From positions 163,804,001 to 163,868,000 of the forward strand of contig CM075977.1 in assembly GCA_038087875.1 (NCBI GenBank): a stretch of 64,000 nt of DNA, in the 5' to 3' direction. Positions within the stretch are counted from its first letter, which is position 1. The number at the start of each line of letters is the position of its first letter. The notes beneath the pieces are model-generated. The model ran no database searches. It was not told where the DNA came from and was given only the letters and a program-made list of their open reading frames with translations. Both the position numbers and the translations under genes were made by a program. Positions 679 through 64,000 of the stretch are shown one piece after another. Source of the stretch: Malacoraja senta. Taxonomy: Eukaryota.

Positions 679-1999
679 CAACTTGAGAATAAAATGGTAC
701 CAAACGATTGGTGTTCTATTTAAGCATGCAGTCTTACAAAAGCCTTGTAAACACTCACGCTATCAAGTAGAGTGGCACCAATTTCAGAAAGAAAAGCCAG
801 ATCAGCCCCAAACATTAGTACTATTTTTGTTCTCGCCTCACATTTACACTGAATATCTGTTTGTTTATTTCTTTACAGAGAAAGTGATTCCGCTTCTTTC
901 CAATTATTAAGTATATTACGTTGAAGGGACCAAAAAAATAGGTAGATTTCCAGAACCGTTTAAATCACTGTTACTCACATTTGAACAGGCAATTGTGAAT
1001 AGTGTAAGGCACAGTGAACAACAGACAGAAATTGAAGATCAGCACCATTCTGTAAATGCTGTCTACAAACCAATACTGTCTTTAGATTTTGTCATATGCT
1101 TGGTTGGAATTACTACACAGTGGGCAGGAAATGTAAAGGGACATCTCCCACATGCCTTCCCAATTGATCCCTCCCAATAATTCCAAAGAGTACTTTTAAG
1201 ATTGCAGTGGGAATGTCTGTTCATTTCCACAATATTACTAAGGACAGAAGAACATGCATTAGGAAAATAATTTGTGAAGTGTGGCATTTTGCCATTACTA
1301 CACTCTCTGCAGAGTGCAATTATTGGCTGCAGTCTGCGGTGTCAATTTAAATGGAGCTGAACGCAGTGGCAATTACTTTTTTTTAAATTTGCTACCACTT
1401 GACATACCCACTGAAGGAGCTGGTGCCATCCCACACCACCACAGGATGATAGCGCATTCCAGTGCACAGACCCTGCTGGCCCTCAGTTGTGATTCAAGAT
1501 CTGTGGCTCTGTCATTTAGTGTAATAATGATGCAAATATGGAAATGGATGCAAAAGAATTTCCTCTGAAATAATTGCGTTGCTTTGCAGCATCTGGCAAT
1601 GAATATTACTTTGCTAAGATGGGCCACTTCTGTCACTAACCGGAAGATGACCCACTAGAAGAGGAAAGGAAGACCACGCAGTTTAAGCAGATTATTCCCC
1701 TGTTCATGGTGCTGGTGTTAGCTACTGGAAGATGCTCGAGGTTTAGGTGTGAGGAGATTCCTTATCCATTTCCTTTGATTTTTCTCTGCTATTAAATGTT
1801 AGGTCGCCTTTCTGGTGACTTTTGCTGACTTCACTACTCCCTGGGAATGCACAGGATTAATTTGGGTTCTTTTAATTTAGGACTATTGGAATCTGATGTA
1901 GATGTCAAACAAAAGTAAAAGTCAAAAGAGAGTGCAGTGGTAAAATAACAAGTTTAATGCTTTCAAAGAGCGAGCACATGGTGGATCAAAAAACATCCT

Positions 2000-2243: not shown

Positions 2244-2905
2244 CATAGAAACATAGAAAATAGGTGCAGGAGTAGGCCATTCGGCCCTTCGAGCCTGCAC
2301 CGCCATTCAATATGATCATGGCTGATCATCCAACTCAGTATCCTGTACCTGCCTTCTCTCCATACCCCCTGATCCCTTTAGCCACAAGGGCCACATCTAA
2401 CTCCCTCTTAAATATAGCCAATGAACTGGCCTCAACTACCTTCTGTGGCAGAGAGTTCCAGAGATTCACCACTCTCTGTGTGAAAAATGTTTTTCTCATC
2501 TCGGTCTTAAAGGATTTCCCCTTAATCCTTAAACTGTGCCCCCTTGTCCTGGACTTCCCCAACATCGGGAACAATCTTCCTGCATCTAGCCTGTCCAACC
2601 CCTTAAGAATTTTGTAAGTTTCTATAAGATCCCCCCTCAATCTTCTAAATTCTAGCGAGTACAAGCCGAGTCTATCCAGTCTTTCTTCATATGAAAGTCC
2701 TGACATCCCAGGAATCAATCTGGTGAACCTTCTCTGTACTCCCTCTATGGCAAGAATGTCTTTCCTCAGATTTGGAGACCAAAACTGTACGCAATACTCC
2801 AGGTGTGGTCTCACCAAGACCCTGTACAACTGCAGTAGAACCTCCCTGCTCCTATACTCAAATCTTTTGCTATGAATGGTAACATACCATTCGCTTTCTT
2901 CACTG
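2244..2905 (-). mobile_element. Young 5'-truncated CR1 LINE 3' end
   Basis: ORF 2335-2829 is the CR1 ORF2 C-terminus (RPHLEYCVQFWSP...RLRGDLIE...FFTQRVVNLWNSLP). (CTATGTTT)n tail. Confidence 0.95.
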
Positions 2906-9574: not shown

Positions 9575-9870
9575 TTAGTTTAGAGATACAGCGTGGAAAC
9601 AGGCCCTTTAGCCCACCATATCCAGCCCGACCGCACATTAACACTATCCCTACACCCACTAGGGACAATTTTACATTTACCAAGCCAATTAACCTACAAA
9701 CCTGTACTTCTTTGGAGTGTGGGAGGAAACTGAAGATCTTGGAGAAAAACCCACGCGGTCACGGGGAGAACGTACAAACTCCATACAGACAGCACCCATA
9801 GTCAGGATCGAACCCGGTTCTCCGGCGCTGCACTCGCTGTAAGGCAGCAACTCTACCACTGTGACTGCCC
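9575..9870 (-). mobile_element. V-SINE (HE1-like): tRNA-derived head, V domain, CR1-type tail
   Basis: Minus strand has B box GGTTCGATCC, V core TATGGAGTTTGTACGTTCTCCCCGTGACCGCGTGGGTTT, and tail GCCTGTTTCCACGCTGTATCTCTAAACTAAA. Confidence 0.88.
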
Positions 9871-11084: not shown

Positions 11085-14000
11085 TGTCGGGGGAGACGAT
11101 GTTTCCAGTCCGAGCGGCGCGGCACGTCGGTGGCTCCAAAACCTAGAGATGGGACTCGACCGGCGAGACCGACATCGGGCAGAGCCATAGTGGTGGGTGA
11201 CTACATTGTCTGAGGAGGAGACAGATGATTCTGTGGCGGCAGACAAGACGCGAGGATGGTCTGTTGCCTCCCTGGTGCCAGGGTTCAGGATGTCACGAGC
11301 CGAATATAGAACATCCTCGAGAGAGAAGGTGAACAGCCGGCAGTAGTTAGTGCACGTAGGCACAAACGACATCAGGAAGAAGAGGAAGGAGGTTCTCCAA
11401 CATGAGTTCAGAGAGTTGGGAAGAAGACTGAAAGGCAGGACTTCTAGGGTGGTTATCTCTGGATTGCTTCCAGTACCTCGTGCTAGTGAGGACGGGAACA
11501 GGGAGAAAGGGGATCTGAATGTGTGGCTGAGGGGCTGGAGCAGGGAGCAAGGGGATTTAGATTTATTGACCACTGGGATCTCTTCTGGGGTAGGGGTGAC
11601 CTGTACAAAAGGGACGGGTTACACCTTAACTGGAGGGGGACTTACATTCTGGCAGGCAGGTTTGCTAGGGCTACACGTGTGGGTTTAAACTAAATAGTGG
11701 GGGGGAGGGATTGACAAATTGGGAGTATAAAGATGGAGTTAAAGGGGAAGTGACTACAGGAAAAATTACAAAAGATTCTCGAATTAATGGAAAGGAAAGT
11801 TCGAGAAGAGATAAAAAGAGTACGGTCAGGACCAATTGCAAGCGGTGCGAGGGGGACGTGAATACGGAGGTCAAAGTGTTGTATATGAATGCGCGAAGTA
11901 TAAGAAATAAAGTGGACGAGCTTGAGGCTCAGTTAGAAATTGGCAAGTATGATGTTGTGGGAATTACAGAGACTTGGCTGCAAGAGGGCCAGTGCTGGGA
12001 ACTGAATTTTCAAGGGTATACCTCCTCTCGAAAAGACAGACAGGTGGGCAGAGGGTGTGGGGTTGCTCTGTTGGTGAGGAATTAAATTCAGTCCCTTGCA
12101 ATTGAAACAGGAGATGTGGAGTCAGTATGGATAGAACTAAGGAATTGTAAGGGTAAAAAGACCCTAATGGGACTAATCTACATGCCCCCAAACAGTAGCC
12201 TGGACATAGGGCGCAAGTTGAATCAGGAGTTAAAATTGGCATGTAGCAAAAGTAATGCTGTGGTTGTTATGGGAGATTTCAACATGCAGGTAGACTGGGA
12301 AAATCAGGTTGGTACTGGACCCCCAAGAAAGGGACTTTGTAGAGTGCCTTTGTGATGGATTCTTAGAGCAGCTTGTATTGGAGCCTACCAGGGGGAAGGC
12401 AATTCTGGATTTAGTGTTATGTAATGAACTGGATTTGATAAAGGACCTCGAGGTTAATGAGCCATTAGGAAGTAGTGACCATAGCATGGTCAGGTTTAAT
12501 CTACAATTGGAGAGGGAGAAGGGTAGATCGGAGGTGTCAGTGTTTACAGTTGAATAAAGGGGACTATGGGGCCATGAGGGAGGAGCTGGCCAAAGTTGAC
12601 TGGAAAGATACACTAGCAGGGATGACAGTGGAACAAAAATGGCAGGTATTTCTAGGGAATAATACAGAAGGTGTAGGATCAGTACATTGCTAGGAGGAAG
12701 AAAGATTCCAAGGGGAGTACGGGGCGACCGTGGCTGACAAGGGATGTCAGGGACAGTATAAAAATAAAAGAGAAGAAGTACAACATAGCAAAGATGAGCG
12801 GGAATCAAGAGGATTGGGTAATGTTTAAAGAGCAACAGAAGATAACTAAAAAGACAATAAGGGGAGAAAAGATGAGGTATGAAGGTAAGCCTAGCCCAAG
12901 AATATAAAGCAGGATAGTAAAAGCATCTTTAGGTATGTGAAGAGAAAAAATTAGTTAAGACCAAAGTTCGACCCCTTGAAGACCGAAAAAGGTGAATTTA
13001 TTATAGGGAACAAGGAAATGGCAGATGAGTTGAACAGGTATTTTGGATCCGTCTTCACAAAGGAGGACACAAACAATCTTCCTGATATAGTAGTGGCCAG
13101 AGGATCTGGGGTGACGGAGGAACTGAAGGAAATCCACATTAGGCAGGAAATGGTGTTGGGTAGACTGATGGGACTGAATGCTGATAAATCCCCAGGGCCT
13201 GATGGTCTGCATCCCAGGGTATTGAAGGAAGTGGCTCTAGAAATCGTGGATGCATTGGTGATAATTTTCCAATGTTCTATAGACTCAGGACCAGTTCCTA
13301 TGGATTGGAGGGTAGCTACTGTTATCCCACTTTTTAAGGAAGGCGGGAGAGAGAAAACAGTGAAAAAAAAGACCAGTTAGCCTGACATCGGTGGTGGGGA
13401 AGATGCTGGAGTCAATTATAAAAGATGAAATAGCGGCACATTTGGAATAGCAGTAACAGGAACGGTCCGAGTCAGCATGGATTTACGAAGGAGAAATCAT
13501 GCTTGACTAATCTTCTGGAATTTTTTGAAGATGTAACTAGGAAAATGGACAAGGGAGAGCCAGTGGATGTAGTGTACCTGACTTTCAGAAAGCATTTGAT
13601 AAGGTCCCACATAGGAGATTAGTGGGCAAAATTAGGGCACATGGTATTGGGGGTGCTGACATGGATAGAAAATTGGTTGGCAGACAGGAAACAGAGAGTG
13701 GGGATTAACGGGTCCCTTCAGAATGGCAGGCAGTGACTAGTGGGGTACCGCAAGGCTCGGTGCTGGGACCGCAGCTATTTACAATATACATCAATGATTT
13801 GGATGAAGGGATTCAAAGTAACATTAGCAATTTGCAGATGACACAAAGCTGGGTGGCAGTGTGAACTGTGAGGAGGATGCTATAAGAATGCAGGGTGACT
13901 TGGACAGGTTGGGGGGGTGGGCAGATGTATGGCAGATGAAGTTTAATGCGGATAAATGTGAGGTTATCCACTTTGGTAGCAAAAACAGGAAGGCAGATTA

Positions 14001-16480: not shown

Positions 16481-17022
16481 CATCATCATTAAGATATGCA
16501 GTGGCTGCACACACACCCCACCGCACAACACAATGGCCAAATAAGGCCCGTAACGTAGAAATATATAAAGGTTGCAAGAAGGAAAATATCACAAACAACA
16601 AGTGCACCATAAAATGATAACCATGGGAAGATGATCTGTATTTCATCTTCCCACTCTCATTTTTGAACATTTCAATAACGGGGCTCACAGCTCCAGGTCT
16701 CCGTCCTGCGATTGCTGTCATCCGATTAACACCTGCTCTACAGCAGTTTTTCTATTTGCAGGTAATGCAAACAGAATATGCCCAGACATATACCTCGACA
16801 ATGACAAAATACTTAGTGAACTTCAAGGGCTACGAAATCTCATACAGAGCACAAACTGCCAACAAATGAAGGCGGAAGATGAGGAAACGCAGTTGTTTTT
16901 TGCATTTCAACAGTAAAACAAAATAAATTTTAAAAAGCAATATATCTAGAAAATTCTGATTTCATTCTTGGTCCAATAGACAACCAATCATCAGAAATAT
17001 CACCAGGTTTACTAAACCAAGT

Positions 17023-18681
17023 GTGTAAGAAGGAAATGCAGATGCTGATTTAAACCGAAAATAGACACAAAAGGCTGGAGTAACTCAGCGGCAGAGGCAG
17101 CATCTCTGGAGAAAAGGAATGGGTGATGTTTCGGGTTGAGACCCTTCTTCAGACTGGTTAGGGATAAGGGAAACGAGAGATATAGACGGTGATGTGGAGA
17201 GATAAAGAACAATGAATGAAAGATATGCAAAAAGTACCGATGATAAAGGAATCATTGTAAGCTGTTTGTAGTGTGAAAATGAGAAGCTAGTGTGACTTGG
17301 GTGGGGGAGGGATAGAGAGAGAGGGAATGCCGGAGCTACCTGAAGTGAAAGAAATCAATATTCATACCACTGGGCTGTAAGTTACCCAAGCGAAATATGA
17401 GATGCTGTTCCTTCAATTTGTGTTTAGCCTCACTCTGACAATGGAGGAGACCGAGGACAGAAAGGTCTGTGTAGGAATGGGAAGGAGAATTAAAGTGTCC
17501 GGCAACCGGGAGATCAGGTTGGTTCACGAGGGCTGAGCGAAGGTGTTCCACGAAACGATTGAACAATGGATATAGTAGATGAGGTTGGAGGAGGTGCAAG
17601 TGAACCTCCCGCCTAACCTGAAAAGGATTGTTGGGGTCCCTGGACAGAGTCGTGGGAGGGAGGTATAGCGACAGGTGTTGCATCTTCTGCGGTTGCTGGG
17701 GAAGGTACCTGGGGAGGGGGTAGTTTGGGTTGGAAGGGATGAGTTAAACAGGGAGTTGCGGAGGGAACTGCGGTAAGGCGGAAAGGGGTGGAGATGGGAA
17801 ATGTGGCTAGTGGTGTGATCCCATTGGAGGTGATGGAAATTTCAGAGGATTGTGTGTTGTATGCGACGGCTGATGGGGTGGAAGGTAAGGACTGGGGGAA
17901 CTCTGTCTCTGTTACGACTAGAGGGAGGGGGAGCATGGGCGGAGCTGCGGGTTATCGAGGAGACATGAGTGAGGGCCTCATATATGATGGGAGAGGGGAA
18001 CCCCCATTCCCTAAAGAATGAGGACATCTTGGATGTTCTAGTATGGAACACCTCATCTTGGGCGCAGATGCGGCATAGACGGAGGAATTGGGAGTATGGG
18101 ATAGAGTCTTTGCAGGAAGCAGGGTGGGAAGAAGTGTAGTTGCAGATAGTTGTGGGAGTCAGTGGGTTTGTAATAGACATCACTCAATAGTCTATTTCTC
18201 GTGATGGAAATTGTGAGAAAGGGGAGTGAGGTGTCGGAGATGGTCCAAGTAAATTTGAGTGCATGATGAAAATTGGTGGTGAAGTTGATGAAGTCCATGA
18301 TTTCTGCATGGGTGCAGGAGGTGGCACCAATGCAGTCATCAATGTAACACAGATAGAGTTCGGGGATGGGCCAGTACGCCTGGAACAGGGATTGTTCAAT
18401 GTACCCAACAAAGAGGCAGGCATAGCTGGGGCCCATGCGGGTGCCCATAGCTACGCCTTGGCCTTGGAGCAAGTGAGAGGAGTCAAAGGAGAAGTTGTTG
18501 AGGGTGAGGACCAGCTCCCCTAGGTGGAGTAGAGTGTTAGCAGAGAGATCACGTCACCATCTATATCTCTCGTTTCTCTTATCCCTAACCAAACTGAAGA
18601 ACGGTTTCGAACCAAAACGTCACCCGTTCTCTCCAGAGATGATGCTGTCCCGCTGAGTTACTCCAGCTTGTTGTGTCTATC
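17023..18681 (-). mobile_element. Penelope-like retroelement (RT plus GIY-YIG C-terminus), 5'-truncated, with inverted terminal repeat
   Basis: Motifs QGVAMGTRMGPSYA, YIDD (18335-18346), YYKPTDSH, SSHP..KDSIPYSQFLRL, RFVEH..PVAGHF..EQHLIFRLG.LQPSGMN. Terminal repeat at 17023-17200 with an inverted copy at 18549-18681. TSD-like ACTA(A)ACCAAGT at 17011-17022 and 18682-18692. Confidence 0.92.
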
Positions 18682-26397: not shown

Positions 26398-27140
26398 TAC
26401 TTTGGAGTGCTGGTGCAGGATTCCCAAAAGGTTAATTTGTAAATTGAATCAGCAGTAGGGAAGGCAAATGCAATGATAGCACTTATTTCAAGAGGACTAG
26501 ACTATAAAACAGAGATGTAATTCTGAGGTACACAAAAATGCTGGAGAAACTCAGCGGGTGCAGCAGCATCTATGGAGCGAAGGAAACAGGCAACAGGCTT
26601 TATTACGCATTTGGAGTATTATGCGCAGTTTTAGGCCCCATATCTGAGGAATGATGTTCTGGCTTTGGAGAGGGCCAGAGAAAGTTTACGAGAATGATCC
26701 CAGGGATGTTTGGGTTAACGTATGATGAGCGTTTGACGGTACTGGGCCTGTACTCGCTGGAGTTTAGAAGGATATGGGGGGACCTCATTGTAACTTACCG
26801 AATAGTGAAAGGCCCAGATAGAGTGGATGTAGAGAGCATGTTTCCACTAGTGGGAAGGTGTAGGACCAATGGGGACAGCCTCAGAATAAAAGGTGATGAG
26901 GAGAAATTTCTTAAGTCAGAGGGTGGTGAATCTGAGGAAATCATTACCACAGATGGTTGTGGAGGCCAAGTCATTGGGTATTTTTAAAGCGGAGATGACA
27001 GATTCTTGATTAGTTATGATGTCAAAGGCTATGGGGAAATGGCAAGAGAATGGGGTTGAGAGGGAAAGAGAGATCAGGCATGATTGAATGGTGGATTAGA
27101 CTCATTGGGCTGAATGGCCTAATTCTGCTCCTGTGGCTTA
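26398..27140 (+). mobile_element. CR1 LINE 3' fragment, interrupted by a Penelope-terminus fragment at ~26530-26594
   Basis: ORF 26694-26987 contains LGLYSLEFRRIWGDLI. CR1 3' stem region GGGCTGAATGGCCT. Confidence 0.85.
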
Positions 27141-29531: not shown

Positions 29532-30329
29532 AGCGAGTTCAGTATACCGACTGCGCATGCCCAGGTCATAGGTCGACAGATGGCGCAATGGGCTAAGTGT
29601 TCAGCTGGCAACCGGAAGGTAGCCGGTTCAAATCCCGCTTGGAGTGCATACTTTCGATGTGTCCTTGGGCAAGACACTTCACCCACCTTTGCCTGCGTGT
29701 GAATGTGTGTGAATGTGTGTGAGTGATTGGTGGTGGTCGGAGGGGCCGTAGGCGCAAATAGGCAGCCACGCTTCCGTCAGTCTGCCCCAGGGCAGCTGTG
29801 GCTACAGAAGTAGCTTACCACCACCGAGTGTGACTGAGGAGTGAATGAATAATGCGATGTAAAGCGCCTTGAGTATTAGAAAGGTGCTATATAAATCCCA
29901 TCCATTATTATTATTATTATTATTATAGGTCATGCGCGATAAACATTCTCAGCAGCTGTGCTGCTGCATGGAAACAGACCTGCATTTCATCCGTAGACAG
30001 GATCGAACCCGGTTCTCTGGCGCTGCAAGCGTGTTGAATTGCTACTGGACGGTCCTCGTCCCCTCCCGAGTGTCCCATCCCTGTCCGGGGTGGTCGGAGA
30101 TGTCCGAGGTGACCCTGGACTGACGGGACACCGGCCTGGAGCAGTGGGGGCCCAGGCTTCCAGTAGCAATTCAACAGCGCTTGCAGCGTCGGAGACCCGG
30201 GTTAGATCCTGACTACGAATGAAACGCAGGTCTGTATCCATGCACAGCACAGCTGCCGAGAATGTTTATCGAGAGTGACATTTGACAAATCCCATGATTC
30301 CTTGCGTTTTTCAGAATACCGAACTCGCT
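29532..30329. mobile_element. Non-autonomous foldback/MITE-like DNA element
   Basis: Termini AGCGAGTTCAGTAT / ATACCGAACTCGCT flanked by TA. Internal ~113-bp inverted arms at 29937-30049 and 30159-30271. Confidence 0.75.
29575..29924 (+). mobile_element. Young tRNA-derived SINE resembling the teleost AFC family, with an L2-type tail
   Basis: A/B boxes TGGCGCAATGG and GGTTCAAATCC, GTGTCCTTGGGCAAGACACTTCACCC core, TGTAAAGCGCCTTGAG..GCTATATAAAT..(ATT)n tail. 7-bp TSD ATAGGTC at 29568-29574 and 29925-29931. Confidence 0.85.
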
Positions 30330-47444: not shown

Positions 47445-47589
47445 NNNNNNNNNNNNNNNNNNNNNNNNNNNNNNNNNNNNNNNNNNNNNNNNNNNNNNNN
47501 NNNNNNNNNNNNNNNNNNNNNNNNNNNNNNNNNNNNNNNNNNNNNNNNNNNNNNNNNNNNNNNNNNNNNNNNNNNNNNNNNNNNNNNNN
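47445..47589. other. Assembly gap (N run)
   Basis: Run of Ns. Confidence 1.
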
Positions 47590-56126: not shown

Positions 56127-56282
56127 NNNNNNNNNNNNNNNNNNNNNNNNNNNNNNNNNNNNNNNNNNNNNNNNNNNNNNNNNNNNNNNNNNNNNNNNNN
56201 NNNNNNNNNNNNNNNNNNNNNNNNNNNNNNNNNNNNNNNNNNNNNNNNNNNNNNNNNNNNNNNNNNNNNNNNNNNNNNNNNN
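56127..56282. other. Assembly gap (N run)
   Basis: Run of Ns. Confidence 1.
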
Positions 56283-62569: not shown

Positions 62570-64000
62570 CAGTGGCAGTCCCCTTAGCCTTCTTCCCAAT
62601 CTTTTAAAGATTACCTACCTCCTTTCTAAATACCCCCAGTAAGATTCCTTCCACAATTTCTGAAGTAGAGAATTTTAAAGATTTACTGTACACGCTGAGA
62701 AGAAATTCCTATCATCTCAGTTTTAAATGACTACCCCTTTATCTTACAATCATGCCCTTCTTTTGAAACTATCCCATGAATGGAAACATAGAAACATAGA
62801 AACATAGAAAATAGGTGCAGGAATAGGCCATTCGGCCCTTCGAGCCTGCACCGCGATTCAATATGATCATGGCTGATCATCCAACTCAGTATCCTGTACC
62901 TGCCTTCTCTCCATACCCGCTGATCCCTTTAGCCACAAGGGCCACATCTAACTCCCTCTTAAATATAGCCAATGAACTGGCCTCAACTACCTTCTGTGGC
63001 AGAGAATTCCACAGATTCACCACTCTCTGTGTGAAAAATGTTTTTCTCATCTCGGTCCTAAAAGACTTCCCCCTTATCCTTAAACTGTGACCCCTTGTTC
63101 TGGACTTCCCCAACATCGGGAACAATGTTCCTGCATCTAGCCTGTCCAACCCCTTAACAATTTTGTAAGTTTCTATAAGATCCACCCTCAATCTTCTAAA
63201 TTCTAGCGAGTACAAGCCGAGTCTATCCAGTCTTTCTTCATATGAAAGTCCTGACATCCCAGGAATCAGTCTGCTGAACCTTCTCTGTACTCCCTCTATG
63301 GCAAGAATGTCTTTCCTCAGATTAAGAGACCAAAACTGTACGCAATACTCCAGGTGTGGTCTCACCAAGACCCTGTACAACTGCAGTAGAACCTCCCTGC
63401 TCCTATACTCAAATCCTTTTGCTATGAATGCTAACATACCATTCGTTTTCTTCACTGCCTGCTGCACCTGCATGCCTACTTTCAATGACTGGTGTACCAT
63501 GACACCCAGGTCTCGTTGCATCTCCCCTTTTCCTAATCGGCCACCATTCAGAAGCATTGAAAACTTCTCAAGACCCATTACCATCTTATATATTTCAACA
63601 AACCAAACCTGATTAGCCTTCCTTGATATAACAATTCTCTAATCTTAGAAATGAATGTGCTTTTGCTTTGCCTCTAATGCATAAAAATCTTTTCTTAAAT
63701 AAGAAGACCAAAATTGTACAGAGTACTCCAGGTGTAGCCTCATCGCCACACCCAGTTTCATTGTAATACTACTCCCCTATTTTTAAATTCCAACTCATCT
63801 AAAATAACGGCCTAAATGCCATTTTCCTTTCTAATGATTTTCTGCATCAAAGCACAATTATTGTAAACTTGATACAAGCACAAAAATACCCTAGACCCCT
63901 TTATACTCCACTCATTTGATTCCTCTCTCCATTTAGACAATTGCCTTTTGATTATTGTTACCTCATATTTTTCTATATTAAATTCCAGTTGCCATGAGTT
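62570..64000 (-). mobile_element. Old degenerate CR1 fragment hosting the young CR1
   Basis: Both flanks of 62783-63552 are decayed CR1 3' sequence (e.g. GAAGAAATTCCT..CATCTCAGTTTTAAATG and GACCAAAATTGTACAGAGTACTCCAGGTGTAGCCTCA) and are collinear across the insertion. Confidence 0.7.
62783..63552 (-). mobile_element. Young 5'-truncated CR1 LINE 3' end, same subfamily as 2244-2905
   Basis: ORF 62886-63584 is the CR1 ORF2 C-terminus. (CTATGTTT)3 tail. Only scattered substitutions relative to the 2244-2905 copy. Confidence 0.95.

Follow-up and report, generated by a model that had tools for sequence, protein, structure and literature searches.

CiLINE2 is the partner LINE of the cichlid SINE family AFC (SINE2-1_AFC). 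AFC has been listed among the CORE-SINEs, and its type of core, CORE2, is common even to a bivalve SINE (PMC4824008). AFC proper is described as specific to East African cichlids (PMC9223172). The CmiSINEs (SINE2-1_CM) of the elephant shark are CORE-SINEs, too, and are tied to the LINE L2-2_CM; SacSINE1, known from sharks, skate and chimaera, is 76.6-77.5% identical over about 250 bp to LmeSINE1 of the coelacanth, a similarity which takes in head, Deu domain and tail and was read as vertical descent (PMC5499810). Stringent recognition of 3' ends with stem-loops was described for such LINE/SINE pairs, e.g. for UnaSINE1/2 and UnaL2 of the eel (PMC3747384).

The 64,000 nucleotides of the skate Malacoraja senta analysed in this study (the window) contain at positions 29575-29924 (+) a tRNA-headed SINE of 350 bp, read directly from the sequence. 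Within the CORE-SINE superfamily it is a new, AFC-like member, but not part of the AFC family proper, whose described range is limited to East African cichlids, the host here being a skate. In the literature searched, no description of this skate family was found. The element shares with AFC a tRNA-type head with the same 3' half, a CORE2-type core, a 97-nt domain, an L2-type tail and an ATT-rich end. It differs from AFC in its cartilaginous host, in the 5' half of the head, in a 31-bp TG tract present in the skate and in three compensatory stem pairs. Closest overall are the sparid-like and labrid families described below, with which it has in common the TG tract, the CORE (44/44 for the sparid-like consensus), the folded domain (88.7% for this consensus) and the ...ATCCATTATTATT end, whereas the heads are only 55-57% alike and the loops of the folded domain differ. 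We know of no published name for these sparid-like and labrid CORE-SINE families.

The same general plan of tRNA head, CORE and L2-derived tail is found in MIR, in other L2-tailed CORE-SINEs and in the CmiSINEs. The core and tail of MIR are those which we take to resemble the CORE and the TGTAAAGCGC...ATAAAT tail of the skate SINE. The CmiSINEs differ in that their core is 67-68% like the CORE consensus and in that they were not found in Leucoraja erinacea (PMC5499810), whereas the skate SINE is of the AFC 'CORE2' type. SacSINE1 and LmeSINE1 likewise exhibit whole-SINE conservation with an L2-type tail across the bony/cartilaginous split, but they possess a Deu central domain instead of a CORE and are documented in several chondrichthyan lineages. 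UnaL2 and the UnaSINEs provide the model of an L2-clade reverse transcriptase which recognises a structured 3' tail together with a short repeat at its end, both being common to the LINE and its SINE. In UnaL2 the known signal consists of one stem-loop with TGTAA repeats; the candidate signal of the skate SINE is a 97-nt three-way junction with tail and ATT repeats.

Structure and insertion site of the skate SINE

The element is flanked by target-site duplications read directly from the sequence, the 5' copy ATAGGTC at 29568-29574 (+) and the 3' copy at 29925-29931 (+), which match exactly over 7 bp. The span 29568-29931 given by the initial annotation therefore runs from copy to copy, and its 7-bp duplication was confirmed. 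The tRNA-derived head covers 29575-29658 (+) and contains a box A-like motif TGGCGCAATGG (29581-29591) and a box B GGTTCAAATCC (29625-29635). Compared with the Rfam tRNA model, the head reached 13.6 bits (E 6.8, gathering score 29) with the D-arm and the T-arm aligned, and ARAGORN called no tRNA in it. Such sub-threshold tRNA scores are usual for SINE heads. Weak Rfam matches of the SINE to mir-1238 and Plastid-ycf2 were rejected as chance.

Behind the head lie a CORE domain of the AFC type ('CORE2', 29659-29704, +) and a TG-rich tract (29697-29728, +; 31 bp compared with the AFC-type copy L010). These are followed by a GC-rich domain of 97 nt (29729-29825, +), for which a three-way-junction RNA with a 9-bp closing stem and three hairpins is predicted. 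The linker and the L2-type 3' tail extend over 29826-29903 (+), with TGTAAAGCGCC at 29858-29868 and GCTATATAAATCCCATCC at 29886-29903, the tail motif GCTATATAAAT beginning at 29886. The SINE ends in an (ATT)7 microsatellite (29904-29924, +), read directly, too.

No second copy of the skate SINE was detected in the 64-kb window by motif search, BLAST, nhmmer or a covariance model of the folded domain. The SINE contains 14 CpG sites, corresponding to an observed/expected ratio of 0.67 compared with 0.54 for the whole window. The initial annotation had described the copy as CpG-intact and young. It is indeed richer in CpG than its background, but not fully intact; for instance, the tail reads GGTGCT where the teleost copies have GCGCT. 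The exact duplications and the intact (ATT)7 repeat point to a fairly fresh insertion; however, the copy is about 3% away from its family sequence (see below), which possibly means tens of millions of years or more.

Positions 29929-30271, the 3' flank, form an inverted repeat of 343 bp that consists of V-SINE-like pieces. It is 78.6% identical to its own reverse complement, its pieces also match positions 9719-9840, and its edge is the exact insertion point of the SINE. No repeat of the 5' flank occurs in the window. The nesting in host repeats assumed in the initial annotation is thus found on the 3' side but not on the 5' side. A usable host exon was not found in the 64-kb window.

Related elements in teleosts

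Teleost copies were reached by translating the longest open frame of the skate SINE, which is antisense, and searching protein collections with it. The protein matches are spurious ORFs called on SINE copies. The profile search of about 15 billion predicted proteins, including many teleost genomes and fish-associated metagenomes, yielded 36 matches with at most 76% BLASTP identity to the skate translation over short stretches, and all matches inspected look teleost-type. No skate-type ORF was among them, so that this search cannot gauge the spread of the family in cartilaginous fishes. Exact look-up of the skate SINE ORF and of two L002-type ORFs returned no record, and a pattern scan of viral and prokaryote genome collections gave 0 matches.

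Four of the copies (L001, L006, L007 and L008) stem from one ENA assembly series and were combined to a 4-copy consensus, which we call sparid-like. The C2 gene next to L001 has 94% identity with the homologue in Pagrus major, and the named matches among the 120 listed are all percomorph. A 20-kb sample of Pagrus major contained no copy. L009 is a decayed copy from the labelled genome of the labrid Xyrichtys novacula. The AFC-type copy L010 lies on an ENA contig. Over 80 aa, the antisense ORF of this copy, P0142, shows 68% identity to the N-terminus of P0148 from the cichlid Maylandia zebra, a part derived from a SINE, and the two are nearly identical across the stretch from the folded domain to the CORE; in P0148, tail, folded domain and CORE have the same order as in the skate SINE. 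Both P0148 (UniRef A0A3P9C3A7, 'Serpin B6'), in its residues 1-80, and P0139 of Xyrichtys novacula (CAJ1075808.1), over its whole 147 aa, are antisense SINE translations. The N-terminus of the former and the latter 'hypothetical protein' are probably annotation artefacts.

From Archocentrus centrarchus, a labelled cichlid locus (L004) carries two CORE-SINE copies, L004a and L004b, which lack the 97-nt domain. They are located at 16718-16940 (+) and 1505-1792 (-) of this locus and represent a second CORE-SINE type with similar head, CORE and tail. A 20-kb sample of this species contained just this type. Because of the L004 type without folded domain, two related SINE lineages must be regarded as co-existing in cichlids.

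A pattern scan of JGI metagenomes gave two matches, L002 and L003, in which the same 97-nt domain and tail follow a head and body of V-SINE type. The L002 head matches a cichlid copy along its entire length, and the labelled relatives of the integrase neighbouring L002 are all teleost. L003 (JGI RepKanNP_BrdU_F12BDRAFT_1000724, 1-110) carries a fish SINE tail, truncated at the 5' side, that hardly differs from the one in L002. By its name this contig belongs to a Kansas native-prairie soil metagenome, and carry-over of fish DNA seems likely. The labels of L001, L002 and L010 are derived solely from neighbouring genes or protein likeness.

From head to ATT repeat, colinearity of the skate SINE extends to the AFC-type, sparid-like and labrid families. 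It matches bony-fish elements of the cichlid AFC type at about 80-87%, and its homology with the AFC-type CORE-SINEs of percomorph teleosts runs from end to end. The comparison comprises one copy on the skate side, four copies in the teleost consensus and a single AFC-type copy, not a curated consensus, for AFC. Against this AFC-type copy (L010), identity is 81.3% over 289 aligned bases of the 350 (69% counting gaps), the family threshold used for comparison being 80% identity over 80% of the length, with 73% in the head, 30/31 in the CORE, 82.5% in the 97-nt domain and 82% in the tail, the TG tract being absent from L010. The sparid-like consensus reaches 86.7% in the body (head 67%, CORE 44/44 with 2 gaps, TG tract 77%, 97-nt domain 88.7%, tail 79%). 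For the labrid copy L009 the overall value is 77% (head 64%, CORE 78%, TG tract 74%, 97-nt domain 85.6%, tail 81%). L002 does not share head and CORE, but is 81.9% identical over element positions 133-320 (TG tract 80%, 97-nt domain 92.8%, tail 72%). The TG tract is hence present in the sparid-like, labrid and L002 copies. Compared with the two labelled cichlid copies of L004, the CORE matches at 22 of 26 positions, and the ...ATCCATTATTATT end is also present in the teleost copies L007, L009 and L010.

Over the whole head, identity between skate and teleosts is 55-64%, with the lowest values (55-57%) for the sparid-like and labrid families. The 3' half of the skate head is close to L010, whereas its 5' half is unlike the opening stretch common to the AFC-type and sparid-like heads. 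A near-identical teleost sequence was not recovered, the best values being 87% for the body and 93% for the folded domain.

The sequence blocks of the cichlid AFC consensus listed in the initial annotation are all present in L010 in the same order, and the positions left open in these blocks are those at which L010 and the skate SINE differ. Its claim of a similarity exceeding the short core holds as well, as this similarity includes the 3' half of the head, the CORE, the 97-nt domain, the tail and the (ATT)n end. The L2-type tail it had described is colinear with the AFC-type, sparid-like and labrid tails at 79-82%. V-SINEs are characterised by an 80-bp V central domain. The V-type head and body of L002 match L004 and window positions 9719-9796, not the skate SINE. 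A reading of the skate element as a V-SINE was rejected for this reason; it shares just the 3' module with L002.

The 97-nt folded domain and the tail

The 97-nt domain has a predicted minimum free energy of -49.9 kcal/mol (z -4.35), and none of 200 shuffled sequences folded as well. Across 8 copies of the domain, 94.6% of the pair cells are standard pairs and 5 pairs are changed on both sides, a number reached by 2 of 500 shuffles. Three of these five are found in the AFC-type copy L010 (UA to CG, GC to AU and UA to AU). The covariation score of 0.126 is higher than in any of 500 shuffles and any of the slid controls, the latter giving at most 1 such pair.

Differences between skate and teleosts are concentrated outside the stems. 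In the comparison with the sparid-like consensus, differences affect 8 of the 23 unpaired positions but no more than 3 of the 74 in stems (p=3e-4); compared with L002, the values are 6 of 23 and 1 of 74, respectively (p=6e-4). The stems thereby differ at 1-4% of positions and the loops at 26-35%. Because the differences between skate and teleosts fall in the loops, the stems must be under strong selection. Loops, head and linker are 20-45% diverged between skate and teleosts, indicating that the split between them is old. This pattern speaks against any sampled teleost family having a recent ancestor in common with the skate SINE.

It is in keeping with the known 'stringent' mode in which reverse transcriptases of the L2 clade recognise structured 3' ends (PMC3747384). 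In L002, a V-SINE-type body is followed by the same folded domain and tail. As a result of this reuse, the combination of both can be said to behave as a LINE-derived module. No LINE carrying the tail of the skate SINE was detected in the window or in the fetched teleost loci. Irrespective of how the family reached the skates, a 97-nt three-way junction persists from skates to cichlids, showing compensatory changes, and is reused by several unrelated SINE bodies, making it a candidate recognition signal of one L2 lineage.

Descent or possible transfer, and age of the family

Between 42 and 81% of the sampled 31-mers of the skate SINE are present in sequencing runs of 8 organisms from 10 studies; these organisms are known by code only, and skates and teleosts cannot be distinguished among them. 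Some of these runs comprise just 91-186 million letters, and the presence of the 31-mers in such small runs indicates a high copy number. Most of these organisms share only the same 13 of the 31 sampled 31-mers, from which we read roughly 10 differences, about 3%, between the skate copy and the common family sequence. Rates of evolution are slow in elasmobranchs, so that 3% can mean tens of millions of years or more (PMC5499810). Since 8 organisms in 10 studies hold 42-81% of the 31-mers, the family is established and abundant and is not a contamination, and the skate SINE is one retroposed, fairly fresh copy of a family resident in the skate and its relatives. Teleost contamination or an assembly artefact, for which nothing speaks beyond the teleost likeness itself, was rejected as having hardly any probability: exact 7-bp duplications bound the SINE inside contiguous host sequence with V-SINE-like repeats adjoining, and its 31-mers occur in runs of 10 studies. 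The initial annotation had argued against contamination, too, and the flanking duplications, the contiguous host sequence and the runs of 10 studies agree with it.

With some reservation and at somewhat less than even confidence, we favour an old, vertical common ancestry of the skate SINE and the AFC-type CORE-SINEs of percomorphs. By analogy with the 'stringent' LINEs of the L2 clade we infer both the mechanism and the LINE partner. RNA polymerase III would transcribe the SINE from its head, in which box A and box B lie; the folded 3' domain, the tail and the ATT repeat would be recognised by the reverse transcriptase of a LINE of the L2 clade, and this enzyme would copy the RNA into the nicked target, giving rise to the 7-bp duplication. 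On this account the L2 lineage and its CORE-SINE parasites would predate the split of bony and cartilaginous fishes, and the high identity would be maintained by strong purifying selection on the CORE and on the stems of the 3' domain as well as by slow evolution of the skate lineage. Vertical descent fits the observation that identity tracks constraint (CORE 44/44; stems 1-4% and loops 26-35% different; covariation in the junction; heads 55-64% identical), the 5' half of the head being unlike the opening common to AFC-type and sparid-like heads, and the finding that none of the teleost ORFs among about 15 billion proteins is more than 76% identical to the translated skate SINE. It also fits the precedent of SacSINE1 and LmeSINE1 together with the slow rates of elasmobranchs (PMC5499810) and the occurrence of CORE2 in bivalves (PMC4824008). 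Against it stands that no chondrichthyan-wide CORE-SINE is documented and that the chimaera family was not found in L. erinacea (PMC5499810).

Furthermore, simple vertical descent predicts the skate SINE to be the outlier, whereas the distances of the body and of the 97-nt domain show otherwise. Body identities are 86.7% for skate and sparid, 81.6% for skate and labrid, and 81.2% for sparid and labrid. In the folded domain, the skate is 85.6-92.8% identical to three teleost types, the AFC-type 76-83.5% to the same types. By distance, with one skate sequence and no outgroup, the skate thus lies inside the teleost range for body and folded domain and slightly outside for the head. Under vertical descent, such distances could result from a slow skate lineage or from old teleost SINE lineages existing side by side. 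SINEs have no synonymous sites, and slow skate rates combined with constraint fit vertical descent equally well as transfer.

The position of the skate family within the distances between teleost families, in body and folded domain, together with the end-to-end colinearity including (ATT)n, may alternatively be due to an ancient transfer, an explanation which we consider possible but rather doubtful. According to it, an exchange of an L2-clade LINE between the skate lineage and one of ray-finned fishes took place tens to hundreds of millions of years ago, and the CORE-SINE either moved along or was rebuilt on the tail afterwards and then amplified in skates. A study of 2026 placed L2s of L. 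erinacea in the otherwise actinopterygian subclade 4A, termed this a 'possible ancient HTT', and found no L2 in galeomorph sharks, a hint of a patchy distribution of L2, and Crack and Daphne only in 10 teleosts, L. erinacea and lamprey (PMC13343379). The chimaera CORE-SINE that is not detectable in L. erinacea (PMC5499810) points in the same direction. However, nothing ties the skate SINE to an L2 of subclade 4A, there being no L2 with its tail in the window or the fetched loci. The distances are also explained by a slow skate and old co-existing teleost lineages, as cichlids carry two types with and without the 97-nt domain, and in its 5' half the head is unlike the sampled teleost heads. Moreover, horizontal transfer of L2 is reported to be rare and to occur almost exclusively from teleost to teleost (PMC13343379). 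The horizontal transfer proposed in the initial annotation is therefore sustained in its description, i.e. an AFC-like CORE-SINE with L2-type tail and a similarity going past the core, but not in the need for transfer, in view of the missing near-identical teleost copy, the identity in constrained parts and the vertical precedent of SacSINE1 and LmeSINE1. A recent transfer from an unsampled marine teleost with a near-identical family is very improbable. The copy looks fresh (exact duplications, intact (ATT)7, CpG 0.67), and a teleost might be among the holders of 42-81% of the 31-mers that are known by code only; but the recovered teleost copies reach at most 87% in the body and 64% in the head, the loops of the folded domain are 26-35% diverged, no ORF exceeds 76% among about 15 billion proteins, and the family is already present under 8 organism labels. 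A recent jump between classes has no support here. By template switching, skates and teleosts might also each have built similar SINEs from the same inherited modules (a tRNA head, a CORE of older CORE-SINEs and the 3' end of the respective L2), the colinearity of the whole element then not being due to common descent of one SINE. L002, in which the 97-nt domain and tail stand behind a head and body of V-SINE type, would be in accordance with such an independent assembly, as would L004a and L004b, with CORE and tail but without the domain, and the AFC-type without TG tract. We nevertheless consider it unlikely, since the order and the junctions of CORE, TG tract, folded domain and tail are common to skate, sparid-like and labrid elements, the 3' half of the head is common also to the AFC-type, and a single ancestor is more parsimonious than the same assembly happening repeatedly.

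Hardly any cases are documented in which SINEs passed horizontally between vertebrates. If the vertical descent favoured here is correct, the skate SINE represents an unusually well-preserved case of whole-element SINE homology across about 450 million years. Should the ancient transfer apply instead, which we hold to be possible with less confidence, no earlier case would be known of a SINE family passing from one vertebrate class to another, and the 'unexpected' little-skate L2s of subclade 4A (PMC13343379) would have their non-autonomous counterpart in this family. A SINE/LINE pair common to skates and percomorphs would provide a second, independent marker for the 'possible ancient HTT' of these L2s.

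Other retroelement remnants in the window were recognised by eye. Open fragments resembling ORF2 of CR1-like LINEs are located at 2335-2829 (-), 62886-63584 (-), 26694-26987 (+) and 12976-13380 (+); with their C-terminal ...LGLYSLEFRR... motif they look like several copies of one family. A 139-aa ORF at 18053-18472 (-) with a YIDD motif resembles a fragment of a Penelope-type reverse transcriptase. Runs of N are present at 47445-47589 and 56127-56282.
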